The notes under the pieces: generated by a model
The model's input: only the letters and a program-made list of their open reading frames with translations
Databases searched by the model: none
Told to the model about the DNA's origin: nothing
In this document: positions 432 through 33,869 of the stretch, piece after piece
Numbering within the stretch: position 1 is the stretch's first letter
Layout: every line of letters begins with the position of its first letter
Virus record (IMG/VR): IMGVR_UViG_3300020477_000990
Coordinates: 124,001 to 188,000 of that record
DNA: 64,000 nucleotides
Reading direction: 5' to 3' (one strand)
Program-made: the position numbers and the translations under genes

Positions 432-735
432 CGCCAGGCGCTTCAGCAATATTTTGATAATCAACTAAATCATAAAACTCATCTTTAGTTAATAAAACAC
501 CCATTTCTTTTAATTCTTCCCAATTGTCATTTAAATGACTTAATAAATGATCACGTTGTTCATGAACACCTTGCTCTACATCTTGATCCCATTCATTTAT
601 TTCATAGATAGAATCTAGTCGCTCATCTATTTCAAGTATTTTTGCTACAATCAAATGACTTTGGTTAATTAATTCCCGGTATTTTTTATGATCCAGTTTT
701 AGTTTTATTATTAATTCATCATATTTTCTTTTCAT
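421..735 (-). CDS. Hypothetical acidic helical protein
   Basis: ORF 421..750; second ATG (735) lies 5 nt after TAAATA at 741-746. Confidence 0.6.
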   Translation of the reverse strand: MKRKYDELIIKLKLDHKKYRELINQSHLIVAKILEIDERLDSIYEINEWDQDVEQGVHEQRDHLLSHLNDNWEELKEMGVLLTKDEFYDLVDYQNIAEAPGVTL

Positions 736-771
736 AAAAGTATTTAGCATAGAAAATGACGTATTTTCTCA

Positions 772-800
772 TTGACATCGTCCAATAATTCAGCTATTAT
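772..800 (+). promoter_or_regulatory. sigma70-type promoter, probably leaderless
   Basis: TTGACA 772-777, 17-nt spacer, TATTAT 795-800, ATG at 807 with no SD. Confidence 0.65.
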
Positions 801-806
801 TTTATT

Positions 807-1043
807 ATGTTTATAGATAATGAAAAAGAAAATACTGAATTAATTTATGATGAATACATGACCTTCACATTTAATTTAATTAAAGAAGGAACTGATCCTC
901 TACAATGTGCTGGAGTAATGATGGCTCAAGCATTAATGCATTATAAATCAGCATTAAGCCATGATGAGTATAATAAAATGGTTGAATTAATGTATGACTC
1001 TAAAGATTCTGTAAAGCAATTTCCAAAGCCAAAGTTGAATTAA
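807..1043 (+). CDS. Hypothetical phage protein
   Basis: 78-aa ORF directly behind a consensus promoter. Confidence 0.7.
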   Translation: MFIDNEKENTELIYDEYMTFTFNLIKEGTDPLQCAGVMMAQALMHYKSALSHDEYNKMVELMYDSKDSVKQFPKPKLN

Positions 1044-1900
1044 AAGTTAAATAATTTACGATTAACTGAATTATTGTTAATAATTAAATTATTTTTATTA
1101 TATTTTAGTTCATTATTTTTATCTAAGTTAAATGTTTTAGATATAAGATCCCAATCTTCCCAAAATAATTTTTTATTTTTAATTAATTTTATCTTTTCGT
1201 CAGTTGAATTAAACATTTTTCTTGCAGTACCTTTACCAGGAACAATAGGGTTGTCTCCACCTCCTTGATAATATTGATCCCCTAGTAATATTTTTGCATC
1301 AGATTGACTATAATCTCCTTTTAAATCTTCATAAAATGCAATATGATTTATTGTTAAAGGATAAAAATGTAATAATGAATAATCAATTGTTAATTCTTTA
1401 ATAAAATCAATAGCCATTTTGTGATTATAATCTATTTCACCTGTTTTTAATAAGTCTTTTATTATTTCTTTATTCAAATCACACAAAATACCTCTACTAA
1501 TACTTTTCTTATCTTTTCCTTTTCCTAGTATATCCCAATGCTTTCCACCTTCTGGTAGCAATATTTGAGTATGCACTAAAAAGGATAAAAATACTTCAAA
1601 TATATTCTTTCTAATTAATAATATAGTATGATAATACTCTTTTTTTAATTTTCTATCTAGATATGGTAATGCTTTGTAAAAATCAACAGCCATTTGCGGA
1701 CTACTTATAATAACATTATGCTCATCTTTTATTTTAGCTTTTTCATATAGGTTATAATTCGTCAATTTTGATCTATAATAATTTCTCATATTAATAGGCT
1801 TATATCCTCGCGGTGCTTTATATTCAGCTATTAAATCACTACCGTAGGTACTCCCATTGTGACTTAACCCTATAAAAATGATATCTTTATCTTTGCTCAT
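1040..1900 (-). CDS. Putative sulfotransferase-like (Stf0-type) protein
   Basis: N-terminal FIGLSHNGSTY (5'-PSB-like loop) and LIRKNIFEVFLS (3'-PB-like R...S). Confidence 0.45.
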   Translation of the reverse strand: MSKDKDIIFIGLSHNGSTYGSDLIAEYKAPRGYKPINMRNYYRSKLTNYNLYEKAKIKDEHNVIISSPQMAVDFYKALPYLDRKLKKEYYHTILLIRKNIFEVFLSFLVHTQILLPEGGKHWDILGKGKDKKSISRGILCDLNKEIIKDLLKTGEIDYNHKMAIDFIKELTIDYSLLHFYPLTINHIAFYEDLKGDYSQSDAKILLGDQYYQGGGDNPIVPGKGTARKMFNSTDEKIKLIKNKKLFWEDWDLISKTFNLDKNNELKYNKNNLIINNNSVNRKLFNF

Positions 1901-1931
1901 TGTATATGTATTTAACTACCATTGAATTAAC

Positions 1932-1962
1932 TTGACTTTTCCGCAGAAAACTGCTATAAATA
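1932..1962 (+). promoter_or_regulatory. Overlapping sigma70 and TATAAATA late-type promoter
   Basis: TTGACT 1932-1937, 17 nt, TATAAA 1955-1960; TATAAATA 1955-1962; ATG 1969. Confidence 0.65.
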
Positions 1963-1968
1963 TAGAGT

Positions 1969-2352
1969 ATGGAAAAGAAAATAAAGAAATTATTATCAAA
2001 CAGCATGGCTACAGGAATAGCTATTGTAGTATTAATTGTGTGCTTATGTATTATAATTAGCAATAATTCTCTCGAGAAAAGATCATTATTAGCTAATATA
2101 GAAGTATTACAACTAGAAGTCGTATCCTTAGAAAAAGATCGTAAAACTCTAGTAGATCATATAACTGAGATGGAAGATGAGCGTCAAATATACCTTGCAA
2201 CACTACAAGATATGAAGGCTTACAATGCTAAACTAGAAGCAAAAATTAAGAATTTAGAAACTGATATTACTACTGCTGAGTTTATGATTAATGATTTAGA
2301 ACAGAGTCTAGCTGACTTAAACAGCAAAATAGAAGCCCAACCTTTAGATTAA
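1969..2352 (+). CDS. Membrane-anchored coiled-coil protein (possibly i-spanin-like)
   Basis: N-terminal hydrophobic helix GIAIVVLIVCLCIII followed by heptad-rich region. Confidence 0.6.
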   Translation: MEKKIKKLLSNSMATGIAIVVLIVCLCIIISNNSLEKRSLLANIEVLQLEVVSLEKDRKTLVDHITEMEDERQIYLATLQDMKAYNAKLEAKIKNLETDITTAEFMINDLEQSLADLNSKIEAQPLD

Positions 2353-2414
2353 TTAACATTAATTTTAACCCATACCCAAGGTCTCTTTAAATAGTGTATA
2401 GCAGGGAGGGAGCT

Positions 2415-2732
2415 ATGGCACGTAAGAAGAACCGTTGGAATCAATGGCGTAAAAAAGCCCCCAAAGTACCTGATAATACCTGTCCTTTGATAGATGATAT
2501 ACTCACAGATCTCGAGAAGATCATGGAAGCAAACCCTATATTTGATGAGAAGAAATTCAAGCGAGTTGAGAAGAAATTAGAGCGTCTAAGAAGTCAAAAT
2601 GAAGCCCTAAGAAACAGCGGAATTTACTGGTATGAAAAGTGTAAAGATCACTTAAAAGAGATAAAACCAGATAATTTCGAAGATATTAAGAAGATATACA
2701 AAAAAATAAAACCATTTTTTATGGCGTCATAA
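2415..2732 (+). CDS. Hypothetical phage protein (KAPKVPDxTCP...SGIYWY type)
   Basis: SD GGGAGG before ATG 2415; clean ORF. Confidence 0.75.
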   Translation: MARKKNRWNQWRKKAPKVPDNTCPLIDDILTDLEKIMEANPIFDEKKFKRVEKKLERLRSQNEALRNSGIYWYEKCKDHLKEIKPDNFEDIKKIYKKIKPFFMAS

Positions 2733-2787
2733 AGCACGATTACACTACATGATACACTATACGACATACTAGTGAATAGTAAAAGAA

Positions 2788-3185
2788 TTGTACTATCTGT
2801 GCGTATGAGCACACCCTTGAAAGAAGGGTACCCAAAAAGAGAAACCGCGTCTCGGATCACCGGGGAATCACCACCGAAAAAGTAATTAGTATATGTATAT
2901 CCACGGTCCTCTTAACCGTTAAAAACAGGGTAACCACCATTGATCTATGCTTCCCCATCATGGCCTATATTGTCGCAATTGCGGAGCGGTCTGTCTTTGA
3001 ACAATGACCTTCGGTCATTATCTCCGATCACCCGAAGCACTTATGCTAACGGCTAGTCGCACGTTAGCATGGCGTAGCTTTGGCTGGGTCGTCTTTGATC
3101 AATTGCTCCCTGAATATGTGATCACCATGCTGTATATCGGAGCGACAGCTTCGCGACCTGTTAGCTCTAGGGTGTCGCTAACAGT
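2788..3185 (+). ncRNA. Candidate structured RNA
   Basis: Stems TGTGC/GCACA, ACCCTT/AAGGGT, AATGAC-cUUCGg-TCATT, ATGCTAAC/GTTAGCAT, GGAGC(2983)/GCTCC(3105), TGTTAGC/GCTAACA; the cUUCGg loop favours the + strand. Confidence 0.4.
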
Positions 3186-3218
3186 CAGTCTTAGATAGAT
3201 ATACAGCTATATGGTAGA

Positions 3219-3271
3219 GACCCCGCTGTAAACCATAGGGACCCCGCTGTAACATATACAGACCCCGCTGT
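3219..3271 (+). repeat. Three GACCCCGCTGT direct repeats, exact 21-bp period
   Basis: Copies at 3219, 3240, 3261. Confidence 0.95.
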
Positions 3272-3305
3272 GCGGTCTGATGGATTAGTCAGGAATGTAG
3301 CTGTG

Positions 3306-3414
3306 CCGGGACTAGATCTAGTCATTAGCTCCTGATCTCCAGCTTTAGCTCCGGGACTATATGTTGTGGTGGCCTCGATCTATGCCTCTCATGCGTAGAT
3401 TTATTCCGGGACTA
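3306..3414 (+). repeat. Three CCGGGACTA direct repeats
   Basis: Copies at 3306, 3351, 3406; partial CCGGGAC at 3495. Confidence 0.9.
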
Positions 3415-3445
3415 TATATAGTGGTTTTAATTAGACTAATTTTTA

Positions 3446-3474
3446 TTGACTCATTATCGATAATATGCTATATT
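3446..3474 (+). promoter_or_regulatory. sigma70 promoter with extended -10 inside the non-coding element
   Basis: TTGACT 3446-3451, 17-nt spacer containing palindrome ATTATCGATAAT, TGcTATATT ending 3474. Confidence 0.7.
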
Positions 3475-3645
3475 AAATATACAACATGGGTCGCCCGGGA
3501 CACGTATTCCTTACCGTATGGGGTCGGGCGGTCAAGTCGATCAAGCGTACGATCCGGCGATCAGCGTATGACGAGAAACAATGATGGAGCCCAGAGATAA
3601 TAGTAGCTGTATGACGGGGGACGGTAGGGTGATACAGCTACACCT

Positions 3646-3747
3646 TCAAAGAGGCTCAAAGCACTCAAAGAGCTTCAAAGACACTCAAAGGACTCAAAGG
3701 CGCTCAAAGGGGCTCAAAGGGCCTCAAAGGCGGGGCGAGGTTCAAAG
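3646..3747 (+). repeat. Ten TCAAAG repeats phased at about 10 bp
   Basis: Copies at 3646, 3656, 3665, 3675, 3685, 3694, 3704, 3714, 3724, 3742. Confidence 0.95.
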
Positions 3748-3788
3748 AGGCCAGATGGCCCCTCCGGGGCCTATATTGAGATTTAGTC

Positions 3789-3840
3789 TTGAGATGTTGC
3801 AAAAATACAACACATTTTGAGATGTTGTAGAAATACAACA
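3789..3840 (+). repeat. Two 24-bp direct repeats TTGAGATGTTGyArAAATACAACA, each an internal inverted repeat
   Basis: Copies 3789-3812 and 3817-3840 differ at 2 positions. Confidence 0.9.
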
Positions 3841-4169
3841 GGTGTTGTATAAAAGCCACAAGTTACCGTAACTGCTGTAAACACATTTGGAACACAATTG
3901 GAACAAGATTTCAACACAATTGTTAATAGCTTATTGGCCACAATATGTTGTAGGGTGTGTGATAAACGCGACACAACATCTTGTATGAAAAAAGACTAAT
4001 AATATCAATGGTTTAGCACGGTGAAGCTGTAGCTGTGCTATATGTAGTCAGGACCTGACTAGATATTGTGCCATGGTAAAATGGTCAGAGTTCGGCCCAA
4101 CCTTTGAGTAACAGTCTATTTCTTTCTAAATTTTCTCTGCTCTAGTTAATTTTCGACTGGAGTTAATAT

Positions 4170-4198
4170 TATAATAGCATAGGTTTCTATATTGTCAA
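4170..4198 (-). promoter_or_regulatory. Leftward sigma70 promoter with 12-bp operator, no downstream ORF
   Basis: Minus strand TTGACA-atATAGAAACCTATgc-TATTAT. Confidence 0.7.
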
Positions 4199-4221
4199 GA
4201 GGTTAATTTAAATATTTTTGG

Positions 4222-4249
4222 TTGACACATTGCGTAACCGTGCTACAAT
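4222..4249 (+). promoter_or_regulatory. Early sigma70 promoter
   Basis: TTGACA 4222-4227, 16 nt, TGcTACAAT ending 4249. Confidence 0.75.
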
Positions 4250-4322
4250 AAAGAATGAGCCTGTTGTAATGAATCGATAGGTATACTTAGATGAAGCAGG
4301 CTCATTTAAATAGAAAGGAAAT

Positions 4323-5896: not shown

Positions 5897-6508
5897 ATGC
5901 CAAATTGGTGTAATAATAATATAATAATAAAAGGCCCAAAGAAAAAGATAAAGGATCTAGAAGCGGCGGCTAAAGAAGGACAATTTTGTAATTGGTTAGT
6001 TGCTATGCCGAAGGTTTTAGAAGATACAACTGCTGACGGGACTGAAAAACCTAAACTTAAAAAAGCAACAGGTTTTAGTGATTGGTACGATTGGCGAGTT
6101 GCCAATTGGGGAACCAAATGGGATGTAGATGCTTACGAAGGTTCAATAAAAATCAAAGAAGAACTATTAGGCAAAGACAATGGTAAAGCAGAGTTATCAT
6201 TTGGCTTTGATAGTGCTTGGGCACCTCCATTAGAAGCAATAGCAACTTACCTAGAGAAGAACGATGATGTTTCTATGAAACTATGGTATTATGAACCAGG
6301 TTGCGACTTTGGTGGAGTTTGGGAAGACTTTAACGATGATTGTTGGCAAATATCAGAAGTTCAAGATAGTTTTTTAATTAACGATCCTGTAGGTAGAGAG
6401 TTTAACGATTACTTTGGACTATTAGAATCTAGGGAAGAGTGGAGAGCTGATGAGGAAAATGATCCTAAGTCAGTTGCTAAATGGAAGGCAGTTCAAGGTG
6501 CAGAATAA
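5897..6508 (+). CDS. DUF1281/YubB ferredoxin-like domain protein
   Basis: MPNWCNN start, WYDWRVANWGTKWD and FDSAWAPP motifs. Confidence 0.75.
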   Translation: MPNWCNNNIIIKGPKKKIKDLEAAAKEGQFCNWLVAMPKVLEDTTADGTEKPKLKKATGFSDWYDWRVANWGTKWDVDAYEGSIKIKEELLGKDNGKAELSFGFDSAWAPPLEAIATYLEKNDDVSMKLWYYEPGCDFGGVWEDFNDDCWQISEVQDSFLINDPVGREFNDYFGLLESREEWRADEENDPKSVAKWKAVQGAE

Positions 6509-6848
6509 GGTCGCAAACGATAATTTACCTATTGACTATAAAGACTGCGATAGTAATACGGAAGTGATTGTTGATAAGAACGGTCACTTCCTAACGCATT
6601 ATGTATTAGCCGAAAGATTACTGCAAGTTGAGTATGCATCTATAAGAGATCAATTACGCAACGAACCATCAAGCGATACTTTAACATATATTCTTGAAGG
6701 TGGCTTTAGAGGCTTTCACAAATACACAATGGAACAGCAACGAGATGAATGGTTAGATGGTGCAGAAGATAGATGGTATCAGCTGTACGCAGATAAAGAA
6801 CTGCCATGGGAACCATATGAGGAGGATCCGATATGCAAAGTAAAATAA
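6450..6848 (+). CDS. Hypothetical acidic protein (true start possibly a GTG near 6498)
   Basis: ORF in a tightly packed operon; start uncertain. Confidence 0.65.
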   Translation: MRKMILSQLLNGRQFKVQNKVANDNLPIDYKDCDSNTEVIVDKNGHFLTHYVLAERLLQVEYASIRDQLRNEPSSDTLTYILEGGFRGFHKYTMEQQRDEWLDGAEDRWYQLYADKELPWEPYEEDPICKVK

Positions 6849-7015
6849 CAAAAGCACCTTTGATGTTAAAAGGAATAAATGAATCTTTTAATAAAAAAGA
6901 TAAAGAACTTATATCAGAAATGATTTGGGATAAGGTTAGAGAATTGCTTCCTGACTCTCCAGGTATTACTGGTATTAGTTATGAAATCAATGTACAAGTA
7001 CAGGAGGAAGAATAA
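6833..7015 (+). CDS. Small hypothetical protein
   Basis: SD GAGGA; coupled to neighbours. Confidence 0.65.
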   Translation: MQSKITKAPLMLKGINESFNKKDKELISEMIWDKVRELLPDSPGITGISYEINVQVQEEE

Positions 7016-7185
7016 TGGCTAAATGGAAAATCCATGTAGACCTAGATGCCGCTAGGGAAGAAGCAGAATATTTAGAGTCTTTAACAATTGAAGCCGATAA
7101 TGAAGATGAAGCCTTAACAAAAGCAGATCAGATAGTTAAGTCAAATATGTATGGTGGACCTTATTATAATGTGGAGGAGGAGTAA
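7015..7185 (+). CDS. Small acidic protein, DpnD/PcfM-like motif (not in ORF track)
   Basis: MAKWKIHVDLDAAREEAEYLESLTIEADNEDEALTKA..., SD AGGAGG, TAATG coupling both sides. Confidence 0.75.
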   Translation: MAKWKIHVDLDAAREEAEYLESLTIEADNEDEALTKADQIVKSNMYGGPYYNVEEE

Positions 7186-7448
7186 TGGCTAATAAAGATA
7201 AATTTTTGCTGAAGCCCAAAAATTTACTAGATAAATTTTTGCTGGATGATGACTCCGGGGTTAATTTAATGGATTTGTCAGTAGAAGAATTAAAGGATTA
7301 CAAAGAAACAATTATTGAAAAGATTGAAAAATATCTTCCAGAACTTTGTGATGATATAGATGAAGTAATAGCAATAAAGAAAGAAGCCGAAGATAATTGG
7401 GATGGATCAAATTATCCAGCAATCAATCCATTAGGAGAAGATGTATAA
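7185..7448 (+). CDS. Acidic hypothetical protein
   Basis: SD GGAGGAG, TAATG coupling. Confidence 0.75.
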   Translation: MANKDKFLLKPKNLLDKFLLDDDSGVNLMDLSVEELKDYKETIIEKIEKYLPELCDDIDEVIAIKKEAEDNWDGSNYPAINPLGEDV

Positions 7449-7717
7449 TGGCTTGGACTCAAGAAGAAGAAGAGAAGTATTTAAAGTCACCTTATAAGAA
7501 ATACAGTATAGGTATACCTTATACAGTATGGGTCGATGTAGATGCAAAGGATCAAGACGAAGCGGTTGACTTGGCTTGTAATGCTGAATTTAGTGTGAAC
7601 TTATATATTGGACAAAAGCAACATAGAAGAGTTCATGTAATTCCGGACGCAGAATTGCAAGAATATGTTGATCCTATGGTATGGTGTGAGGACGATGGGA
7701 CTTATAAACCTACATAA
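7448..7717 (+). CDS. Acidic protein, DpnD/PcfM-like motif
   Basis: VWVDVDAKDQDEAVDLA; start at TAATG junction 7448. Confidence 0.7.
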   Translation: MAWTQEEEEKYLKSPYKKYSIGIPYTVWVDVDAKDQDEAVDLACNAEFSVNLYIGQKQHRRVHVIPDAELQEYVDPMVWCEDDGTYKPT

Positions 7718-7736
7718 ACATTGGGAAAATTAATGG

Positions 7737-7765
7737 TTGACAACATAGAAATCTATGCTATTGTT
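7737..7765 (+). promoter_or_regulatory. Early sigma70 promoter with 12-bp operator
   Basis: TTGACA 7737-7742; ATAGAAATCTAT 7745-7756; TGcTATTGT. Confidence 0.75.
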
Positions 7766-7787
7766 AATAATAACAAGAAAGGAAAAT

Positions 7788-7991
7788 ATGTTTAAAACAT
7801 TTTTTAATATATTAGCAACACTTTTAATTGCCGTTGGTTTAATTATGATGGCGGGTAGTGCTAACGATTGTGATGGCAAGTGTATGGAAACTGCTAATAC
7901 AATTACAGAGATGCTTATGTATGCAGGCATTGGCTTAACTTTTATGATATGCGGAAGTGCAATTTTAATTTCAAATAAGAGGGAGGCGTAA
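7788..7991 (+). CDS. Two-TM membrane protein with a Cys-pair loop
   Basis: SD GAAAGGA; two hydrophobic helices flanking NDCDGKC. Confidence 0.75.
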   Translation: MFKTFFNILATLLIAVGLIMMAGSANDCDGKCMETANTITEMLMYAGIGLTFMICGSAILISNKREA

Positions 7992-10686: not shown

Positions 10687-10715
10687 TTGACAATATAGAA
10701 ATCTATGCTACTATA
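10687..10715 (+). promoter_or_regulatory. Early sigma70 promoter with 12-bp operator
   Basis: TTGACA 10687-10692; ATAGAAATCTAT 10695-10706; TGcTACTAT. Confidence 0.75.
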
Positions 10716-10735
10716 TATTAATGAAAGGGAACAAT

Positions 10736-11014
10736 ATGTCAAAAGAAATGAAGAAGGGCGATAAGCCATACGGACATCCATTACCATTCGATTGTGTAGT
10801 GTTAGAAGATCCTGAAGTAATAGCGAATCCATATAGTGGTGAGAAGATAAAACTTCAACCAGATGCGGTTGCCGTTTATGATTCAATTAAAGGTGCTGAA
10901 TTAATGGCACAAGGAATTGATGATGGAGGCCATCCTTTATGGAGACAAGTTAGAGCTGGATTGGATTGGTTTAGAAAACATTATGCAAAAGAATATATGG
11001 TGTTATTAGACTAA
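10736..11014 (+). CDS. Hypothetical phage protein (NPYSGE...AVYDSIKG...YMVLLD type)
   Basis: SD AAAGGGA before ATG 10736. Confidence 0.75.
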   Translation: MSKEMKKGDKPYGHPLPFDCVVLEDPEVIANPYSGEKIKLQPDAVAVYDSIKGAELMAQGIDDGGHPLWRQVRAGLDWFRKHYAKEYMVLLD

Positions 11015-11362: not shown

Positions 11363-11393
11363 TTGACAGAATCCTATAATATGCTATTATAAT
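11363..11393 (+). promoter_or_regulatory. Early sigma70 promoter with operator overlapping -35
   Basis: TTGACA 11363-11368; ACAGAATCCTAT 11366-11377; TGcTATTATAAT. Confidence 0.75.
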
Positions 11394-11414
11394 AGTATGG
11401 AAGGAACAAAAACA

Positions 11415-14940: not shown

Positions 14941-14980
14941 GAGCTATACAGTAGTACTGTTGTATAGAGCTACAATACTA

Positions 14981-15004
14981 AAGGCCCTACGGGGCCTTTT
15001 TTTA
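14981..15004 (+). terminator. Intrinsic terminator closing the early module
   Basis: AGGCCC-tacg-GGGCCT then long T-tract. Confidence 0.85.
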
Positions 15005-16165: not shown

Positions 16166-16176
16166 TAAATACTATT

Positions 16177-16503: not shown

Positions 16504-16511
16504 ATATTTGT

Positions 16512-17409: not shown

Positions 17410-17440
17410 TGTATTAACCAAGTATATAATGAAAGGCTTT

Positions 17441-20074: not shown

Positions 20075-20239
20075 TTATTGTTTATTCTTTTTTAATTTAG
20101 CAATACGTTCTTTTTTAGCTTTAATGCTTTGATCATAGCTCATACGTAATTCTTTTATTTCTTCAATAACACGATCGGCAAAGTCTTTTCTAGCTTTTCT
20201 TATATTTTTTTCTGTACCCACCCAAATAACTTTGATCAT
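20075..20239 (-). CDS. 54-aa basic protein (not in ORF track)
   Basis: MIKVIWVGTEKNIRKARKDFADRVIEEIKELRMSYDQ...; ATGA overlap. Confidence 0.55.
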   Translation of the reverse strand: MIKVIWVGTEKNIRKARKDFADRVIEEIKELRMSYDQSIKAKKERIAKLKKNKQ

Positions 20240-20448
20240 TTAACCCGGCTATCGTAGACATATTCACGTCCACGCATTTCACAAATCCAAACACTTCCAC
20301 GATACTGTTTAAATACCATTTTAATAGATTTTTCTAGGATTATTGTTTTATCACCATTTGGATGATTTTTAATTACTACTCCATTAGCAGTAACGCCATT
20401 ATCTGTACAGGTAATTTTTACTATTTCTTCTTCTTGTTCTCTATACAT
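20236..20448 (-). CDS. Hypothetical protein
   Basis: Promoter TTGACA upstream near 20485-20480. Confidence 0.7.
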   Translation of the reverse strand: MYREQEEEIVKITCTDNGVTANGVVIKNHPNGDKTIILEKSIKMVFKQYRGSVWICEMRGREYVYDSRVK

Positions 20449-20485
20449 ATAATTTATAATATACTACAATATTAAAATTTGTCAA

Positions 20486-22195: not shown

Positions 22196-22227
22196 AACTA
22201 TATTTAACATAGCACAAAAAGGATAAA

Positions 22228-22629: not shown

Positions 22630-23434
22630 AATAGCTTGTATTGGTTGCAGTTGGACTGAAGGTATTGCAGTAGATGGTCAACTTATGGACCACCAAGATA
22701 CATATCCATATCTATTATCTAAATACTTAAGAGAAAATGCAAAAAATAATGTTATGTATAATGCTGGAAGGTCGGCGGCAGGAACAGAGTATTATCATTT
22801 AGTTACTGATTATCTAATTAAAAAATTTAATCCAGATATCTTTGTTATACAATTTACAACACATGATCGTGGAATATTACCGTTAGATCCAATTGATGAA
22901 AACGAGAAAAGATTAAATTTTGGTTATGATACTATTGATAACACTTATTGTAAAATTTGGGATAACAATAAAAGTATAATGCATTTAAGTCCTGGAATGG
23001 GTGCAAGTGCCAGTAAGCATAGTTCAGAAACACAATGGGATGGTTTAATAGATAAAATTTATAACGAACGAATAAAAGGAAAAATGGCTCCAGAAGTTGA
23101 ATTAGATACATTAAAAAAATATATTGCGTTGTGGTGGGAGCAATCAAAAAATTCAGATATACAAAAATATTTTTATTATTCTCATATGTATAGTTTGCTT
23201 GATTATTTAGAAGAATTAGGAAAGCAAGTAATTCCTTTTCATTGGATGAGATATAAACCAGAATTTAGAACTAAACTTTTTGAATTGAGACCATATCCAT
23301 CTATAGAAGGATTTTTAGGTAATAAACGTTTTAAAGATTTAACTCACGATAACGGATTTCATTTTGGTGTAGAAGGACACACTACGATAGTTCAGGAACT
23401 TTTAGGTCCTGCAATTCAGGAAATAATTCAATAG
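22619..23434 (+). CDS. SGNH/GDSL-like protein
   Basis: CIGCSWTEG, NAGRSAAG, DNGFH. Confidence 0.7.
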   Translation: MPTKIACIGCSWTEGIAVDGQLMDHQDTYPYLLSKYLRENAKNNVMYNAGRSAAGTEYYHLVTDYLIKKFNPDIFVIQFTTHDRGILPLDPIDENEKRLNFGYDTIDNTYCKIWDNNKSIMHLSPGMGASASKHSSETQWDGLIDKIYNERIKGKMAPEVELDTLKKYIALWWEQSKNSDIQKYFYYSHMYSLLDYLEELGKQVIPFHWMRYKPEFRTKLFELRPYPSIEGFLGNKRFKDLTHDNGFHFGVEGHTTIVQELLGPAIQEIIQ

Positions 23435-24611
23435 CATTTTCATTACGTAATTTATCAACCATATTAGTTCTTTCCCAAAACTTTGGAATAAGATGTGATG
23501 AATCTTTTTCATACATAAAGTGAATTAATTTATCATAACGTTTTTCTTTATTGTGTGTATACTTGTCAAACCATTCTTGTTCTTGAACGTATCTTTCTTC
23601 TAAACGTTTTTTCATTTCCATTGGAAGTATTTGTATAGAAAGTTCTTCTGGTACAAACAACGGATTAATCAAACTGCCACCAACAGCGTCAACCCAACCT
23701 TTTTGTATCCATTCATGATGAAAGTCTGGTACATGGAAACTATTATATACATTTAAACAAGTTGCAAGGAACACATATACATCTGGACAAATATCAAACA
23801 TACGTTTTCTATTTTCTTCAACTTGTTCCCATGATTGTCCTTTACGTAAGTATTCTCCACGTTTACCCATGCCATCTAACGAAGCACCTATTTTAACAGA
23901 TTCAAAACGATTCCATATTTCCATAACGTCTAATTTTTTAAATACCATTTGTGAAAAGTTTGTGTTGTACTTTAATCTTACGTGATACATTTTACGTTCA
24001 TCAAGTTTTTTTAGAATTCTATAATGCTCTTCCATAATTAATGGTTCACCACCTGCAAAGTATATTTCTTCTAAGCCGTCCATATATGGTTCAACTTTTT
24101 TCCAAAATGTTTCTTCGTCTTTATAAGGTCTTATAATTTTAGGCTGATCCAATGGGCCATATAATTTTACATTATCTTCATACCAACTTGATGATAAGTC
24201 TGGTCCACAAGTTCTACATTTAAAATTACACAAATTTGAAAATCTAAAATCAATATAAGGTAAGTTAATTTTATCAACTGTACCATCTTCTTTAGTGGTA
24301 CCAATCTTATCAAAATGATTTTCAAATGCTTCGTTGGCCCAAGTTCTTGTTGTATTCAATCCACTTGACTCCATGGAATAACAACGAGTACATTCTTTTG
24401 TTGGTTTATCTTTTAACATTGCTACACGCATTTTCTTTAACTTATCTGAATTCCAAATTTCTTCAAATGATTGATCTTTTAAGTTACCAAGTATCTCATT
24501 CATAGGAGCCATACAACAAGGTAACACTCTACCATCTGGCCATGAGTGTAAATGTGTCCAAGGTAACATACAAAATCGTTTTGATTTTTTTAATGCGTAA
24601 TCTTTATCCAT
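23382..24611 (-). CDS. Radical SAM protein with N-terminal twitch/SPASM-like Cys cluster
   Basis: CNFKCRTC; FCMLPW...PCC...CTRC; FAGGEP. Confidence 0.9.
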   Translation of the reverse strand: MDKDYALKKSKRFCMLPWTHLHSWPDGRVLPCCMAPMNEILGNLKDQSFEEIWNSDKLKKMRVAMLKDKPTKECTRCYSMESSGLNTTRTWANEAFENHFDKIGTTKEDGTVDKINLPYIDFRFSNLCNFKCRTCGPDLSSSWYEDNVKLYGPLDQPKIIRPYKDEETFWKKVEPYMDGLEEIYFAGGEPLIMEEHYRILKKLDERKMYHVRLKYNTNFSQMVFKKLDVMEIWNRFESVKIGASLDGMGKRGEYLRKGQSWEQVEENRKRMFDICPDVYVFLATCLNVYNSFHVPDFHHEWIQKGWVDAVGGSLINPLFVPEELSIQILPMEMKKRLEERYVQEQEWFDKYTHNKEKRYDKLIHFMYEKDSSHLIPKFWERTNMVDKLRNENAIELFPELQDLKVPELS

Positions 24612-25632
24612 TTACTTTTTCCTCAATGACGTTAATTAATAAAGGTATTGGTAGTTCAGATAATTTAATATGGTTTCGTGATATTAAACTTTGTGTTGCA
24701 TTTGAATTTACCATTTCATTCATTTTGTTAATGTCAATATTGATTAACCTTCTTAAGTTATCCTCTTTGATTCTATGCAATCTATCTGGATAGTTTACAT
24801 AATCAAAACTATAGTTAAACATATTATGATATGGTTTAATACCAAAAAATTCTTCTAAATGCTTACACATCTTTTTTGAACCCAATGGTATAAACGGTGT
24901 TTTATATAATATTGGCTTCCACGTCTTTTCAGTAATAAAAATACTAGTATCACTAACAATACTTTCTGTTACTATATCAAAACAAGATTCTCTATATTGT
25001 GGTGGAAGTATTTCCTGATTACTTTGTTCGTCAATTGTTTTTGCATCAAAATCTAAAGTTATTGTTTGGCCTTGAAAGTTTTCATTTGCTAAATGCTTTG
25101 TGTTAGGACCGTATCTATTTAGATATGTTATATAACCACGATGGTACCAATCGTTTGAAAAAATTGATTCTACTAAATGAAATCTATGTGGTTTCGCCGC
25201 GGCGTTCATGCAAATAAAATGCTTTGGCTTTTTATCCATATACTTCTTTTTGATTTTATGTTTGTAATAATGATCTATAGTTCTTTTTAATAATGTGTAT
25301 GGATAATAAACACAATGCCCAATAACCTTTGGCTCTTTATGATTCGTTTGCCAATGCGTATAGTTTTTTTCTAAATTAGCATCGCACATTACTAATACGA
25401 TTTTGTTATGATCGTATTCACGTAATATAGTATGCAGTCGTTGTAAAAATTCATCAGGACGTTTTAAATGAATTTCACCTTCATATGAATTTGATATAAC
25501 AATATATGGTTTTTCTTTTGCGTTTAACCATAAGTCGCGAGTATTTAATAAGTCTCTAAATCCTCGATCACGACCACAATCAAAATCGTATATAAGATAT
25601 GTTTTATTATTTTGAACTATAGTATTTGGCAT
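24604..25632 (-). CDS. GT10 (fucosyltransferase)-like glycosyltransferase, TEKT family
   Basis: FICMN...KPHR; FDIVTES...FITEKTWKP. Confidence 0.55.
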   Translation of the reverse strand: MPNTIVQNNKTYLIYDFDCGRDRGFRDLLNTRDLWLNAKEKPYIVISNSYEGEIHLKRPDEFLQRLHTILREYDHNKIVLVMCDANLEKNYTHWQTNHKEPKVIGHCVYYPYTLLKRTIDHYYKHKIKKKYMDKKPKHFICMNAAAKPHRFHLVESIFSNDWYHRGYITYLNRYGPNTKHLANENFQGQTITLDFDAKTIDEQSNQEILPPQYRESCFDIVTESIVSDTSIFITEKTWKPILYKTPFIPLGSKKMCKHLEEFFGIKPYHNMFNYSFDYVNYPDRLHRIKEDNLRRLINIDINKMNEMVNSNATQSLISRNHIKLSELPIPLLINVIEEKVNG

Positions 25633-26227
25633 GGTTTGTATCTAACCTCTTTAATATACTTTTTGCCATTGAGGTACTGTAACTATCAATAGCATTATCC
25701 CAATTGTCTTTAGTTGTAAAAACATCTTGAGGAGTTAAATCTGAATGAAGCCAACTTATGACTCCGCCCCTAGGCCAAGCACCTTCTAATTCGTCATCTA
25801 GTTGCTCAGGACTCCATAAAGCACAACCTACTGCAACTTTAAATAATTTTGGTCCATTGTCTTCTGATATTAGTTGTAATAAATGTTTGCTTGATGTAAC
25901 TGAAATTCCAGATGAAATATTAACGGTATCTTTATCATGATAGTCATGGCTATGTATTATAAAAACTTGTGATGTGTTTACAGGTCCACCATAATAGATT
26001 GGTTGGTTTTTCCATTTGTCAATACATTTTAAACCCATATCTAAACATATTTCTTCTAGGTTTAAACTTCTAGATGGCTTATTAAAAATAACAGCACTTG
26101 CTCCACTGGCGTCATGCCTTATTACTGCTGAAGTAGTTTTATAAAATCTAGGATCAGCCATATGTGGCATAGCAATTAGCATACGCCCTCTAATTCTTTT
26201 TAAGCCTTTATGTGTTTCATTACTCAT
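25607..26227 (-). CDS. YqgE/AlgH family protein
   Basis: LIAMPHMADPRF...IFNKP...YGGPV...GCALWSPEQLDDEL. Confidence 0.9.
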   Translation of the reverse strand: MSNETHKGLKRIRGRMLIAMPHMADPRFYKTTSAVIRHDASGASAVIFNKPSRSLNLEEICLDMGLKCIDKWKNQPIYYGGPVNTSQVFIIHSHDYHDKDTVNISSGISVTSSKHLLQLISEDNGPKLFKVAVGCALWSPEQLDDELEGAWPRGGVISWLHSDLTPQDVFTTKDNWDNAIDSYSTSMAKSILKRLDTNHAKYYSSK

Positions 26228-26237
26228 ATACTATTAC

Positions 26238-27557
26238 TTATCTTGCTAAAAATTCTAGCAATTTGTTCCACCTTTTGTTATGATTTCTGTTAAAAAAATG
26301 ATTCCTGTTATGTTCTAGTTTTTTCCAAACACTCCAGTAAATATTATGTAATTCTTTGATATCCATTTTGCATATACGTTCAATATTGTTCATAATAATT
26401 TTTAATCTTTTAGCTCGATCTAAAATATAATCATATGACTCATCAAACATTTCAGGAAATGTTTCATATCCTTCTGAACGCAAATACTCTAGGCAACCAG
26501 GGCCACTAGTAATAATAAATGGATGGTAGTTTACAAATGGCATATAAGTTTTTTCAGTAACAAACAAAGGAGCACCTGGCTGTGATTCAAATACAGTTTC
26601 AGTTACAAAACTAAAATATGTTTCTTTAAAATGATCTTTAATTAGTACACGTTGATTCATTCCATCGCCTATAGAATTAGAATCATGATCAAGTATTATT
26701 GGTGTTTTTTCTTTAAGCCACAATTTACTATATTCGTCTATTGTATTTGCTAATTGTAAATCTTCTTGTGTTAAATAACTTCTTAAATTGCCAATGCTAT
26801 CAGGAGTAAAGTATCGATTTAAAAAACTATGTATAGTTTGATCTTGCCAACCTTTTCTATATATTTCACTCATTATATAAATTCTATGTTCTCTTGGATT
26901 TGCATTTTTACATAAGAATTTGTGTGAACGTATATGTCCATTTGTTAATTCGTCTGGTTGTATTAATTCATTTGCTACACCTTTTGTTTTGTGATTTTTA
27001 AAGTATCTTACATCACACTCATGACGATAGTTTGTTTCAAATATATTAAATGGATAAACATTTATTTTTTGATCATCACCAATTCTTTTTGCTCTTTGGT
27101 ATGCTTTATAACTTCCTACTATGTTTAAGTCTCCATAAACCATATACACTTTTTCAAAAGGAATTCCTTTATCATTAATACTCCAGATTATATCATCTAA
27201 AAATCGTGGCATAGATAAATGAAAACCTTCTGATGGGAACCATATTAATACTCTTATATTATTATTTGGATTACGTAATAATTCTAATATAGGTTCGTCA
27301 ATATAATGGAAAACGTTTTCATAAAAGAAAGCTAAATCAATCCATTCTGGCTGTATATGATAATACGTTATTTCATTTGTATGTGTGTCATTTATACTTT
27401 TAGAATTCCATTGTATATTTTGTACTTCTAGCATTTTTTCTAAATAGTTTGCTTTTACATTTCCATACCCATTTGAATTTATTTTTCTTTTGTGTGGAGG
27501 TATAGAGTTTGGTATAGGCACACCGTTAATCCAATTTTGATATAATAAATTAAGCAT
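26238..27557 (-). CDS. GT10-like glycosyltransferase, TEKT family
   Basis: FLCKN...REHR; FSFVTET...FVTEKTYMP; start MLNLLY. Confidence 0.55.
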   Translation of the reverse strand: MLNLLYQNWINGVPIPNSIPPHKRKINSNGYGNVKANYLEKMLEVQNIQWNSKSINDTHTNEITYYHIQPEWIDLAFFYENVFHYIDEPILELLRNPNNNIRVLIWFPSEGFHLSMPRFLDDIIWSINDKGIPFEKVYMVYGDLNIVGSYKAYQRAKRIGDDQKINVYPFNIFETNYRHECDVRYFKNHKTKGVANELIQPDELTNGHIRSHKFLCKNANPREHRIYIMSEIYRKGWQDQTIHSFLNRYFTPDSIGNLRSYLTQEDLQLANTIDEYSKLWLKEKTPIILDHDSNSIGDGMNQRVLIKDHFKETYFSFVTETVFESQPGAPLFVTEKTYMPFVNYHPFIITSGPGCLEYLRSEGYETFPEMFDESYDYILDRAKRLKIIMNNIERICKMDIKELHNIYWSVWKKLEHNRNHFFNRNHNKRWNKLLEFLAR

Positions 27558-31696: not shown

Positions 31697-32205
31697 TTTG
31701 TTACCTTACTGTATAATGCAAAGTCACCTGAATACAAGCGACTTAAATCATTTGAATATTTTTTAATTACGATATCGTGTATTTTTTGAATATTTAAATC
31801 GTCTTCTCTTCTTGATTCTTTTTTAATTTTAATATCTGATATTGTAGTAAAGTCATCATCAAAATTTTCTAATGTTCCAATAAAATTAAAATCATTTTTT
31901 TTAATATAAAGACTATAAGGAACACAATGCTCGTTGAAGTTGTCAAAATTACTTATAATGCTTTTAATTTTTTCTTCTGCTTCTTGTTCTGTATAACAGT
32001 TTTCTTGAAACAAATAACTTCTAAGTCGCATCATAGGTAATCTAATAAATGTAAAAGTTGGTTTAGCCTTTTTCTTTTTTGTTTCTTTCATAGATAAAGT
32101 ATTAATTATAATTGACGATGCACATTTAGGAACTACAATATAGTTCCATGTTTTATTAGAAAATATTCTTCCTGCATATCCAAATGAATTTATTATAGCA
32201 TTCAT
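31693..32205 (-). CDS. Sulfotransferase family 2-like protein
   Basis: VVPKCASS (5'-PSB) and FTFIRLPMMRLRSY (3'-PB). Confidence 0.7.
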   Translation of the reverse strand: MNAIINSFGYAGRIFSNKTWNYIVVPKCASSIIINTLSMKETKKKKAKPTFTFIRLPMMRLRSYLFQENCYTEQEAEEKIKSIISNFDNFNEHCVPYSLYIKKNDFNFIGTLENFDDDFTTISDIKIKKESRREDDLNIQKIHDIVIKKYSNDLSRLYSGDFALYSKVTK

Positions 32206-32879
32206 ACGTTTTCCTCTACCCATGGAAGTATAATTTCTTCTGCAAATTTATCATGCTGTTCTTTAGTAGGATGATTACCTTCTGCAAATCCTGGATCCCA
32301 CATTTCATCTACGCACCATTCTGCCATGCCTCCTGTTTTCTTATGAAACCAAAATTGATTCCAATCAACCAATGATACATCTATATCTATTTTTGATAAT
32401 TCATCTTTCCACCAAAAGTTTAACATTGGTATTCTATTAAGTTTGCAATACCATTGTGTTCTTGCTATGTGTTCTAAACTTTCGATAGCACCTTGTTGTT
32501 CGTTATAAATTTTTCTATATGGCTCAAACAAATGTTTTTCAGCTGAATCATTTTCTGATACTTTGTTGTCTACACCATTGCCACCATTTTTAATCCAATA
32601 GCCATTTCGTGTTTTATCTATATATGGTGAACCTTGTTCAAAGCCAAAATCGTGTTCGGTTAAAAATGCACGTCTATGAATTCCACTCCATTGGCATATT
32701 AAGACTCTAGGAAAGTCTTTTAATGTTTCACACATCTTTATTGCTTGTCTGGAAATATAGTCATTACCTGCGGCACAAGAGGCCACATTTCTTACGATAT
32801 ATTTTTCATCGAGTTTACCTGCCCAGGTCATTTCACTATTATATGTGAAGCTACACCCAGCCACTATCACATTGGTCAT
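32202..32879 (-). CDS. SGNH/GDSL-like protein
   Basis: VAGCSFT, NVASCAAGND, NHP; TTGCAT-17-TATAAT just upstream of ATG 32879. Confidence 0.7.
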   Translation of the reverse strand: MTNVIVAGCSFTYNSEMTWAGKLDEKYIVRNVASCAAGNDYISRQAIKMCETLKDFPRVLICQWSGIHRRAFLTEHDFGFEQGSPYIDKTRNGYWIKNGGNGVDNKVSENDSAEKHLFEPYRKIYNEQQGAIESLEHIARTQWYCKLNRIPMLNFWWKDELSKIDIDVSLVDWNQFWFHKKTGGMAEWCVDEMWDPGFAEGNHPTKEQHDKFAEEIILPWVEENV

Positions 32880-32922
32880 ACTAATATTATACACAAATAA
32901 TAAGATAAATGCAAATAGAAAA

Positions 32923-33486
32923 TTATAATATGTGGTCAGCTAATTTTAAATCAACTAGCTGTCTGGCCGTAAAATATTGATCACTTGGTGTGTTTAGTTT
33001 TCTTCGTACTTCTGAAAGAGTCATTCCAGTTGCTTCACGTAATATGTTCAAACATCTTAATTCACAGTTGGCATTTTCTTTCATTTGTGACCTCATATCG
33101 TGCATTTTAGATTCCATAACATCAGAATGTTGATGGTTCATTATTCCAGTATTTTTTCCAATGTATCTTTCACCCTGTTTACCCATAGCAAATATTAAAA
33201 ATCCAGCACTCATAATAGCACCAATTCCTATTGTAGAAATTGGATGGTAGCTATTTCGCATAGCGTCAATAAGTGCAAAAGCTTCATATAAATCACCACC
33301 AGTTGTATTAATGTATAGTTTTAATGTTCTTTTTGGTTTCTTAGATAAGTTAGATGATAGTATCCATTTAACAGTTGCAGACACATTATCGTTGTCAATT
33401 TCACCAGTTAGATAGTGAATATCATTGTCATGTAAGTGACTGTCTATTTTATCTGCCGCTGTGTATTGATCGTATTTTTTACTCAT
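32923..33486 (-). CDS. clpP: ClpP-like serine protease subunit
   Basis: LYINTTGG, catalytic MSAG, MNHQ, YFTA...LKLADHIL. Confidence 0.85.
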   Translation of the reverse strand: MSKKYDQYTAADKIDSHLHDNDIHYLTGEIDNDNVSATVKWILSSNLSKKPKRTLKLYINTTGGDLYEAFALIDAMRNSYHPISTIGIGAIMSAGFLIFAMGKQGERYIGKNTGIMNHQHSDVMESKMHDMRSQMKENANCELRCLNILREATGMTLSEVRRKLNTPSDQYFTARQLVDLKLADHIL

Positions 33487-33549
33487 TTAATGCACCTATA
33501 TGCACTATTTAGTGCATTTGAAATTATTATAGTATATTATAAAAAGATG

Positions 33550-33783
33550 TTATTTTTTTGACTTTTTTGGAGGGTAAGTAGCATTTTTCATACCAGCGCC
33601 AGCTGTAAAACTAGGGCCTACTTTAGGGCCATATCTTTTATTAGTATTGCTAATTTTTCCACCAATTTGTGCATCTTCTCTTTTAACTACTTTTTTTGCA
33701 CGTTTCTTACTTCCAACGCCTACAGGAGCTATTGCTCCAGCAAATCCACCAGCTACTGTTTCTGTGATATCTTTAATTCTCAT
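33550..33783 (-). CDS. Small basic virion-associated-type protein
   Basis: MRIKDITETVAGGFAGAIAP; ATG 8 nt after TAAATA. Confidence 0.6.
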   Translation of the reverse strand: MRIKDITETVAGGFAGAIAPVGVGSKKRAKKVVKREDAQIGGKISNTNKRYGPKVGPSFTAGAGMKNATYPPKKSKK

Positions 33784-33869
33784 AACAAAATTATTTATCA
33801 AAAATTATTATATACGTACATTACTTTGTATATAAATATTTAATAACATAGCAGTTAAAATGAGGTAAA

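Follow-up and report, generated by a model that had tools for sequence, protein, structure and literature searches.

Known late promoters and leaderless mRNAs

The late promoters of phage T4 (TATAAATA), which are read by gp55 together with gp33 and the gp45 clamp, consist of an A/T-rich -10-type box that spans positions -13 to -6 (PMC2988020) and lack a -35 element; as far as is known, T4 late mRNAs have leaders bearing Shine-Dalgarno (SD) sequences. Similar late promoters, ATAAATA / GATAAATA, have been predicted in the jumbo phages CBB, GAP32, and PA5oct, and PA5oct gp346 is annotated as "sigma factor for late transcription." Leaderless mRNAs are exemplified by lambda cI transcribed from PRM and by the many leaderless genes of Mycobacterium, Deinococcus, and Caulobacter, in which a -10 box about 6-7 nt before the ATG is not accompanied by an SD, an arrangement modeled the same way by GeneMarkS-2 class C. 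In other jumbo phages with mapped transcription start sites, no leaderless mRNAs were found in phiKZ, and the untranslated regions in AR9 were 26-491 nt long. In the pelagimyophages, prediction of late promoters was reported to have failed (PMC7029224).

The sequence analyzed here (the window) is a 64,000-nt stretch, positions 124,001 to 188,000, of IMG/VR record IMGVR_UViG_3300020477_000990, a complete marine jumbo phage genome of 328,149 bp (referred to as G000; 31.8% GC) that is distantly related to the PA5oct, Atu_ph07, and Rak2 group. In this phage, about one promoter in three, late (TAAATA) and early (sigma-70-like) alike, sits so close to the ATG that the mRNA is inferred to have no leader or ribosome-binding site. 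This layout is shared by uncultured relatives and by the cultured SAR11 phage HTVC008M; no description of it was found, and leaderless placement is not mentioned in the PA5oct or CBB papers.

Promoters abutting start codons in the window

An initial annotation of the window listed TAAATA boxes 5, 6, or 8 nt before the ATG, a TAAGTA box at 7 nt, and two sigma-70-like promoters in a similar position, none with an SD. This observation was confirmed, as each of these sites exists at the listed coordinates and the absence of SDs holds. Four sigma-70-like promoters (before ATG 10721, 11397, 20448, and 62046) were added in the current analysis. The sites, along with the phage bL12 gene, are as follows.

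733-746 (-): late box TAAATA (746-741), 5-nt spacer cTTTT with T at -1, ATG 735; gene 421-735 (104 aa, no family found), no SD, divergent from gene 807
772-809 (+): sigma-70-like promoter, TTGACA 772-777, N17, TATTAT 795-800, 6 nt, ATG 807; gene 807-1043, SD energy +1.2
1898-1914 (-): late box TAAATA (1914-1909), 8-nt spacer catatAca, ATG 1900; gene 1040-1900 (286 aa), predicted 3-nt leader
1957-1971 (+): late box (TA)TAAATA 1957-1962, 6-nt spacer, ATG 1969; gene 1969-2352, a coiled-coil protein; back-to-back with the 1914 box in a 68-nt divergent spacer
10687-10723 (+): sigma-70-like promoter, TTGACA, N16, TACTAT, 6 nt, ATG 10721; gene 10721-11014, SD energy +2.2
11363-11399 (+): sigma-70-like promoter, TTGACA, N16, TATTAT, 6 nt, ATG 11397; gene 11397-12497, SD energy +1.8
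16166-16179 (+): late box TAAATA (16166-16171), 5-nt spacer ctatT, ATG 16177; gene 16177-16503, a 108-aa hydrophobic protein
16501-16514 (+): late box TAAATA (16501-16506), 5-nt spacer tttgT, ATG 16512; only a 26-aa hydrophobic ORF (16512-16592), so that its coding status is uncertain
17429-17827 (+): phage bL12 gene with both the N-terminal and C-terminal domains; no SD, a TAAGTA lies 21 nt upstream
20446-20485 (-): sigma-70-like promoter, TTGACA 20485-20480, -10 element TATATT or TATTAT, 7-9 nt, ATG 20448; gene 20236-20448
22193-22206 (-): late box TAAATA (22206-22201), 5-nt spacer tagtT, ATG 22195; radical SAM gene 21014-22195
26225-26240 (-): variant box TAAGTA (26240-26235), 7-nt spacer, ATG 26227; gene 25607-26227
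32877-32914 (-): sigma-70-like promoter, TTGCAT (32914), N17, TATAAT, 6 nt, ATG 32879; gene 32202-32879
33781-33797 (-): late box TAAATA (33797-33792), 8-nt spacer atttTGtt, ATG 33783; gene 33550-33783, predicted 3-nt leader
62010-62048 (+): sigma-70-like promoter, TTGACA, N16, TATTAT, 8 nt, ATG 62046; gene ends at 62636

Genome-wide distribution and spacing of the boxes

The pattern is far beyond chance in the whole genome. TAAATA is found in 490 copies, the fewest among the 15 permutations of its letters (752-1252 copies for the others), with 71 copies in the window against 182 expected. At the same time, it is the most enriched hexamer upstream of genes (93 copies against 10.8 expected), and about 25% of all copies lie within 55 nt upstream of a gene in sense orientation, which comprises 3.6% of the sequence space. 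The distance from the box to an ATG that opens an ORF of at least 60 codons, a histogram proposed beforehand as a test of the leaderless layout, shows the predicted peak, with 24 copies at exactly 5 nt and 11 copies at exactly 8 nt, against a mean of about 2 for other gaps (Poisson P of about 1e-17 and 1e-5, respectively). The sigma-70-like promoters (TTGAC-N16-18-TAnnnT) show an equally sharp peak 6 nt before the ATG, with 12 cases at gap 6 and 17 cases at gaps 5-8.

The short-gap TAAATA genes lack SD sequences: their mean anti-SD duplex energy is -0.76 kcal/mol, which is the background level, with 9% of the genes at or below -4.5, as compared to 7% for the random control and 55% for leadered TAAATA genes, whose mean energy is -4.3. 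The start codons of the short-gap genes appear authentic, as only 3 of 39 genes have a downstream in-frame start with an SD, and in most of them the ATG is the first start codon of the ORF. In this class, 39 of 40 starts are ATG, but this does not discriminate, because 94% of SD-led genes also use ATG. The 5' ends of the predicted leaderless genes are not less structured than those of SD genes, which counts against the leaderless reading.

A pyrimidine/purine pair at spacer positions 5 and 6 is seen in both the short-gap and the leadered classes. All 21 gap-5 genes have T at -1, whereas gap-8 genes have T at spacer position 5 in 10 of 12 cases and a purine at position 6 in 12 of 12. The leadered TAAATA copies, which are independent of any ATG, have a purine at the same position in 79% of cases, against 42% for copies inside genes (P of about 1e-12). 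The base before the box is A in 59% of promoter copies and in 4% of coding copies. A position weight matrix shows only this (G)A preference before the box and no conserved -35 element; the first TA of the T4 octamer is not conserved.

Late sigma factor and genomic context

The genome encodes a gp55-like late sigma factor at G000 192150-192956 (+), which matches the profile phrog_12791 with an E value of 3.1e-82 and T4 gp55 with an E value of 8.7e-5 (37% identity over residues 51-116). Judging by the sequence, it is expressed from a sigma-70-like promoter with an SD. A search with the gp45 sliding clamp profile phrog_223 gave no hit at E of 1 or below, although the clamp may be too divergent for that profile, so that full T4-style activation is unproven. 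The TAAATA boxes precede the genes for the terminase large subunit, head closure, and three virion structural proteins, as well as many radical SAM genes of unknown timing. Of the 39 short-gap genes, 11 are divergently oriented, with the box being the only shared element in a 21-130-nt spacer; 4 follow tRNA genes; and in 6, the TAA of the box serves as the stop codon of the upstream gene.

Conservation in relatives and in HTVC008M

In 80 relatives with 55-93% terminase identity, the terminase ATG is mostly preceded by an intrinsic terminator, then TAAATA, and then 5 variable nt, and the protein homology starts at residues 1-5. The neighboring genes show 96 gap-5 contexts, and five large relatives have 30 instances of TAAATA-N4-TATG against 7 for the control pattern. 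In some relatives, the terminase gene is preceded by TAAGTA-N5/6-ATG, as is the PA5oct head protease gene.

The same signature is found at late structural genes of the Pelagibacter phage HTVC008M, which has 12 gap-5 cases against a background of 0-3; of 12 pattern hits, 11 are annotated CDS starts, and TAAATA is again the rarest permutation. HTVC008M belongs to a different T4-superfamily lineage (Kyanoviridae, 147 kb), with annotated T4-type gp55 (185 aa), gp33-like, and gp45 genes. Both phages encode bS21 and NAD synthase, and bL12 and radical SAM genes have been reported in pelagimyophages.

In contrast, T4, whose late boxes likewise precede structural genes, has the box-to-+1 distance that is inferred here but no excess of box-N5-ATG (3 against 2 for the control). 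PA5oct has the same box, the same sigma family, and the same order of structural genes, but its box usually lies 20-35 nt upstream with an SD in between, and there is no genome-wide excess of box-N4-TATG (6 against 7). The signature was likewise not detected in SCTP-2, 121Q, P-SSM2, and Vibrio phage 2.275.O. In comparison with the cellular and lambda leaderless genes, the arrangement described here is found in a virulent jumbo phage, at dozens of genes, and on a phage-specific late promoter as well as on sigma-70-type promoters.

Interpretation

The most likely explanation (probability of about 0.75) is that the phage has two promoter types, sigma-70-like promoters (TTGACA-N16-18-TAnnnT), presumably read by the host holoenzyme, and (G)(A)TAAATA boxes, presumably read by the host core RNA polymerase carrying the gp55-like sigma factor, and that in roughly a third of the transcription units of both types the promoter abuts the first gene. 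The normal start point, 7 nt after the T that ends a sigma-70-type -10 element or 6 nt after the last A of TAAATA, would then fall on the A of ATG; aligned on T(-7), both types give the same +1. In a second late subclass (gap 8), it would fall 3 nt before the ATG. Such mRNAs would begin with AUG, or with RNN-AUG, and would have to be translated by the leaderless route, in which the ribosome recognizes a 5'-terminal AUG, whereas downstream genes in the same operons use ordinary SDs. The motif, its spacing, the lack of SD, the authenticity of the start codons, the conservation across relatives, and the presence of the late sigma factor are all established by this analysis, while the form of the polymerase that reads the box, the exact transcription start site, and the mode of translation are inferred from geometry and conservation; the only RNA runs that contain the phage are stored as assembled contigs, cover fragments, and show no 5' ends. 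The preference for gaps of 5 and 8 nt, with few cases at 6 or 7, has no mechanistic explanation, and the gene calls used here were home-made and crude.

The interpretation offered in the initial annotation is only partly supported. TAAATA behaves as a T4-type late promoter box, and its spacing puts the canonical +1 on the A of ATG. However, the proposed shift from SD-led early genes to leaderless initiation later in infection is not supported, because the sigma-70-like early promoters peak just as sharply next to the ATG and because most late TAAATA promoters (about 90 copies at 10-60 nt, with roughly 16 expected by chance) have leaders with SDs. The strong SDs that had been attributed to early genes belong to operon-internal genes, so that the divide is between promoter-proximal and internal genes rather than between early and late ones. 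The suggested link to the phage bL12 remains conjectural: the bL12 gene is real but is only one of several translation genes in the genome, which also encodes IF1, IF3, and bS21.

An alternative possibility, considered unlikely, is that the boxes are promoters but the proteins are made mainly from longer read-through transcripts by translational coupling or reinitiation, with the transcripts that start at the ATG being minor or poorly translated. Indeed, many boxes sit 0-20 nt after a co-oriented gene, six share its stop codon, and leaderless mRNAs in E. coli are usually translated weakly; where the box overlaps the upstream stop codon (about 10 genes), read-through transcripts and termination-reinitiation could also deliver ribosomes. 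However, the divergent, tRNA-flanked, and terminator-flanked cases have no upstream coding transcript, and the genes include essential ones, such as the terminase. Further, the spacing to the ATG and the T at -1 are conserved over 55-93% protein identity and in HTVC008M, which would be pointless if the start site were irrelevant to translation.

Even less likely, TAAATA could act in the mRNA, as an A/U-rich non-SD ribosome-binding or enhancer element on longer transcripts, for example, bound by bS1 or by ribosomes modified with the phage bS21. The 5-8-nt spacing resembles that between SD and start codon, about 10 boxes overlap the end of an upstream co-oriented gene and would be contained in read-through RNA, and the phage encodes bS21, IF1, IF3, and bL12. 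However, about 90 copies of the same box lie 10-60 nt upstream of genes that have their own SD, boxes directly follow tRNA genes or, in relatives, intrinsic terminators, and 11 genes are divergent, so a promoter must lie in the spacer. In addition, the box matches the late-promoter consensus of T4, CBB, and PA5oct in a genome with a gp55-like sigma factor, sigma-70-like promoters with a clear -35 element show the same geometry, the spacing is stricter than for an SD, and a pyrimidine/purine pair is conserved at the predicted +1.

Finally, an artifact of chance in an AT-rich genome, miscalled starts, or recent duplication of a promoter-plus-gene cassette (8 of the 39 predicted leaderless genes are radical SAM paralogs) is effectively refuted, as a motif-only count that uses no gene calls gives the same peaks, the 14 other permutations do not (apart from overlapping shifts of the same motif and ATAATA at gap 5, with 15 cases), the flanks of the paralogs share nothing beyond the box, the HTVC008M hits coincide with independently annotated starts, and orthologous conservation is seen in 80 loci.

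A more speculative and rather doubtful possibility is that leaderless initiation is a host-lineage-specific expression strategy, adopted convergently by two separate T4-superfamily lineages that infect SAR11-like marine Alphaproteobacteria, this jumbo clade and the pelagimyophages. In this phage, it could be actively supported by the phage-encoded IF3, IF1, bS21, and bL12, which would retune host ribosomes towards 5'-AUG initiation and so favor phage messages over host ones.

If the main reading is correct, it would show that a phage-specific late promoter of the gp55 type can be fused directly to start codons, so that a large share of the messages of a virulent phage, including those of essential packaging and virion genes, bypass SD-dependent initiation. 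The late promoters that could not be predicted in pelagimyophages may simply sit on top of the start codons, a prediction directly testable in HTVC008M, which is cultured on "Ca. Pelagibacter ubique"; if so, there is an easy rule for annotating start sites and operons in a very abundant group of marine phages. The layout also suggests a functional reason for the ribosomal proteins and initiation factors that marine and huge phages carry.

Genome context and relatives

The window (bases 124,001-188,000) is part of a single 328,149-bp contig with 31.8% GC, the ends of which repeat a tRNA gene. This contig is an IMG/VR virus record rated complete, with direct terminal repeats, and it recurs in marine metagenomes from ten studies. 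The window encodes a 1316-aa baseplate wedge protein and a 3986-aa virion protein. The nearest cultured relatives of the wedge protein, with 38-44% identity, are the jumbo phages SCTP-2, Atu_ph07, PA5oct, and the 121Q/Rak2 group. No nucleotide-level relative is present in the phage collection: a megablast search of that collection with 6 kb of the giant gene returned nothing, and relatives were reached only through protein comparisons.

Distance between TAAATA boxes and start codons

The initial annotation described TAAATA late-type boxes, as well as two sigma-70 promoters, that lie so close to the ATG that the mRNAs would be leaderless, with no Shine-Dalgarno (SD) sequence. Every site on which this claim rested is present at the claimed spacing, and the observation is confirmed. 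Genes were called with a purpose-built codon and dicodon model, which gave 429 genes covering 93% of the genome, and a test that needs no gene calls was also run. TAAATA is the most enriched hexamer in the 40 nt before start codons, found in 93 genes against 10.8 expected. It is nevertheless the rarest of the 15 permutations of its letters, with 490 copies against 752-1252 for the others, and the window contains 71 copies against 182 expected from shuffles. When only the hexamer, the gap, and an ATG opening at least 60 codons were counted, TAAATA showed 24 cases at gap 5 and 11 at gap 8, against about 2 elsewhere. The other permutations showed only overlapping shifts of the same signal, apart from ATAATA at gap 5 (15 cases). 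The histogram of box-to-ATG distances, which had been named beforehand as a potential refutation of the observation, therefore supports it.

The short-gap class has background-level complementarity to the anti-SD, with a mean of -0.76 kcal/mol, whereas genes with TAAATA 10-45 nt upstream average -4.3 kcal/mol, and 55% of them have a recognizable SD. Only 3 of the 39 short-gap genes have a downstream in-frame start with an SD, and in most of them the ATG is the first possible start of the ORF. A requirement for AUG does not discriminate between the classes, as this genome uses ATG almost everywhere. A test for less structure at the 5' ends of the predicted leaderless genes found no difference.

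TAAATA as a predicted late promoter

In promoter positions, the box is preceded by A in 59% of cases, often as GA, but copies inside genes are preceded by A in only 4% of cases, which indicates selection against spurious (A)TAAATA. The 90 copies with leaders, which are independent of any ATG, show T at spacer position 5 and a purine at position 6 in 79% of cases, against 42% for the copies inside genes (P about 1e-12). All 21 gap-5 genes have T just before the ATG, while gap-8 genes have T at position 5 in 10 of 12 cases and a purine at position 6 in 12 of 12. This is the pyrimidine(-1)/purine(+1) signature of a start site six nucleotides after the box, and it matches phage T4, whose octamer begins at -13 and so ends at -6 (PMC2988020). 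Gap-5 mRNAs would therefore begin with AUG, and gap-8 mRNAs would begin with RNN-AUG.

Of the 39 short-gap genes, eleven are divergently oriented, with the box as the only shared element in a 21-130-nt spacer, such as the back-to-back boxes at window positions 1909-1914(-) and 1957-1962(+). Four genes follow tRNA genes. In six cases, for example at genome (G000) positions 45301, 104370, 203938, 250903, 290787, and 318715, all outside the window, the TAA of the box is the stop codon of the preceding gene, so that the stop codon, the predicted promoter, and the next start codon are packed into 14-17 nt.

The genome encodes a gp55-like late sigma factor (phrog_12791, E 3e-82; T4 gp55, E 9e-5), whose gene lies just outside the window and is itself expressed from a sigma-70-like promoter with an SD. 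A search with the gp45 clamp profile (phrog_223) gave no hit, which is not taken to mean that the clamp is absent. Boxes at gap 5 or 8 precede the genes for the terminase large subunit, the head-closure protein, and three virion structural proteins, as well as many radical SAM paralogues. At least eleven diverged radical SAM paralogues (phrog_14086 and phrog_21308) are scattered through the genome, eight of them with a TAAATA box 5-8 nt before the ATG, and pelagimyophages have been reported to carry radical SAM genes as well. The paralogues are found at the following positions:

Window 21014-22195(-)
Window 23382-24611(-)
Window 57682-59088
Window 59085-60608
Genome, outside the window: 95253, 224363, 250903, 277300, 289668, 290787, and 302589

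The related phages CBB and GAP32 have already been predicted to use ATAAATA as a late promoter (PMC5259590). In PA5oct, GATAAATA is seen 20-35 nt upstream of late genes, with SDs in between. PA5oct (NC_071039) has isolated examples of the layout described here, namely, TAAGTA-N5-ATG before the head maturation protease gene and GATAAATA-N5-ATG before a 41-aa ORF (positions 1088(-) and 35565(+)), but no genome-wide excess.

Several other features of the genome were noted:

Window 2394-4300: ORF-poor stretch, GC-richer than its surroundings (about 40% GC), beginning just after a TAAATA box (2388-2393)
Window 15077-15960: ORF-poor stretch, beginning just after a TAAATA box (15066-15071), with a fold z-score of -2.1
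Window 15970-16150: imperfect tandem-like repeats of CGCAAATACAA / CACATACAA(A), immediately upstream of the predicted leaderless gene at 16177
Genome 226300-227860 (positions 6300-7860 of genome segment L012), outside the window: stretch between the head-closure and terminase genes

The two ORF-poor stretches gave no credible hit in Rfam searches but could be late-expressed noncoding RNAs. The repeats could represent an origin of replication or a regulator-binding array. The stretch at 226300-227860 is the only part of a 6-kb test stretch with appreciable coverage in two marine metatranscriptome runs and may be a highly expressed late gene. These runs hold parts of the phage only as assembled contigs, with fragmentary coverage and no 5' ends, so they are uninformative about start sites, and contamination by DNA is not excluded.

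Sigma-70-like promoters

The early, sigma-70-like promoters, taken as sites matching TTGAC-N16-18-TAnnnT, show an equally sharp peak. The -10 hexamer ends 6 nt before an ORF-opening ATG in 12 cases and 5-8 nt before it in 17, alongside a second population with 17-40-nt leaders. Six nucleotides after T(-7) is again +1, and two unrelated promoter types thus converge on the same geometry. In the window, this applies to the ATGs at 807, 10721, 11397, and 32879(-) and, less exactly, to those at 20448(-) and 62046. The strong SDs (-10 to -12.6 kcal/mol) that the initial annotation attributed to early genes belong to operon-internal genes of the 5.9-14.9-kb cluster. Accordingly, the proposed switch from SD-led early genes to leaderless late genes is not supported; the contrast is between promoter-proximal and internal genes, and late and early promoters are also interspersed along the genome. 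Overall, the interpretation offered in the initial annotation is only partly supported.

Conservation in uncultured and cultured phages

A set of 80 IMG/VR loci encoding terminases 55-93% identical to the one in this phage was examined. In most of them, the terminase ATG is preceded by TAAATA and five variable nucleotides, usually ending in a pyrimidine, and an intrinsic terminator often abuts the box. A few loci have TAAGTA instead, and a few have a leader with an SD. Protein homology starts at residues 1-5. Across these 520 kb, there are 96 distinct contexts at gap 5, 26 at gap 4, 10 at gap 6, 5 at gap 7, and 8 at gap 8. Five large relatives carry 30 copies of TAAATA-N4-TATG against 7 of the reversed control pattern.

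Counts of box-to-ATG patterns in cultured phages (phage: pattern hits, control hits; pattern used)
PA5oct: 6, 7; TAAATA-N4-TATG
SCTP-2: 9, 9; TAAATA-N4-TATG
T4: 3, 2; TAAATA-N4-TATG
121Q: 3, 9; TAAATA-N4-YATG
Vibrio phage 2.275.O: 0, 3; TAAATA-N4-YATG
Prochlorococcus phage P-SSM2: 2, 4; TAAATA-N4-YATG
Sinorhizobium phage Phosso: 3, 1; TAAATA-N4-YATG
Agrobacterium phage Atu_ph07: 10, 3; TAAATA-N4-YATG
Pelagibacter phage HTVC008M: 12, 1; TAAATA-N4-YATG

The strongest excess by far is in HTVC008M. Atu_ph07 shows a modest excess, the counts for Phosso are too small to judge, and the other phages show none. In HTVC008M, TAAATA is again the rarest permutation, and gap 5 has 12 cases against a background of 0-3. 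Of the 12 pattern hits, 11 are annotated CDS starts, among them those of the head-closure, tail-tube-cap, and baseplate-wedge genes. The tape-measure start (16007) also has the box at gap 5, with an A at -1.

Translation genes and the likely host

The phage carries an unusually full translation-initiation set, together with ClpX, NAD synthase, an alphaproteobacterial-type two-piece tmRNA, and 16 distinct tRNA genes. The bL12 noted in the initial annotation is real and full length. All of the following genes except that for bL12 lie outside the window:

Window 17429-17827: bL12
Genome 24872-25090: IF1
Genome about 94937-95270 (positions 14937-15270 of genome segment L005): two-piece (permuted) tmRNA (Rfam RF01849, 131.6 bits; ARAGORN tag ADENLALAA), overlapped at its 3' end by a predicted TAAATA-N7-ATG radical SAM gene (95253-96584)
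Genome 273525-274796: ClpX
Genome 274793-275350: IF3, full length, with N and C domains
Genome 275381-275713: bS21 with an N-terminal extension of roughly 40 aa, itself predicted to be leaderless from a sigma-70-like promoter (TTGACA-N16-TATTAT-6 nt-ATG)
Genome 275682-276476: NAD synthase

IF3 is reported to antagonize initiation on leaderless mRNAs in E. coli (Tedin et al. 1999). A link between this toolkit and leaderless expression, which the initial annotation had suggested for bL12, is therefore an attractive hypothesis, but on present evidence no more than that. In a check for co-occurrence of phage IF3 with the promoter signature, the IF3_N domain was not found in PA5oct, SCTP-2, and T4 or in seven partial relatives, which are fragments only 21-44% complete.

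The tmRNA type, the low GC content, the marine origin, and the gene repertoire and promoter signature shared with pelagimyophages suggest a SAR11-like or other marine alphaproteobacterial host. The bL12 protein gave no host signal, as its best cellular matches are at most 44% identical over the full length and are taxonomically scattered.

Interpretation

The positions of the boxes, their spacing to the ATG, the lack of SDs, and the conservation of this layout are direct results of the sequence analysis. In contrast, the transcription start sites, the leaderless state of the mRNAs, and the identity of the host are inferred. Among the alternatives, translation mainly from read-through transcripts is possible for the roughly 10 boxes that overlap an upstream gene, but it does not explain the conserved spacing elsewhere. 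An A/U-rich ribosome-binding site acting at the mRNA level is contradicted by the copies with leaders, by the terminator, tRNA, and divergent contexts, and by the parallel sigma-70-like class. Chance, mis-called starts, and paralogue duplication are excluded.

T4-type late promoters and leaderless mRNAs are each known, but literature searches that combined leaderless mRNAs with TATAAATA, gp55, late promoters, jumbo phages, or HTVC008M found no description of the arrangement seen here, although the literature covered was incomplete and this is not proof of novelty. The observed layout extends to the whole genome, to a large uncultured clade, and to a cultured SAR11 phage. The published survey of pelagimyophages states that late-promoter prediction failed in those genomes (PMC7029224); promoters fused to start codons would explain that failure.
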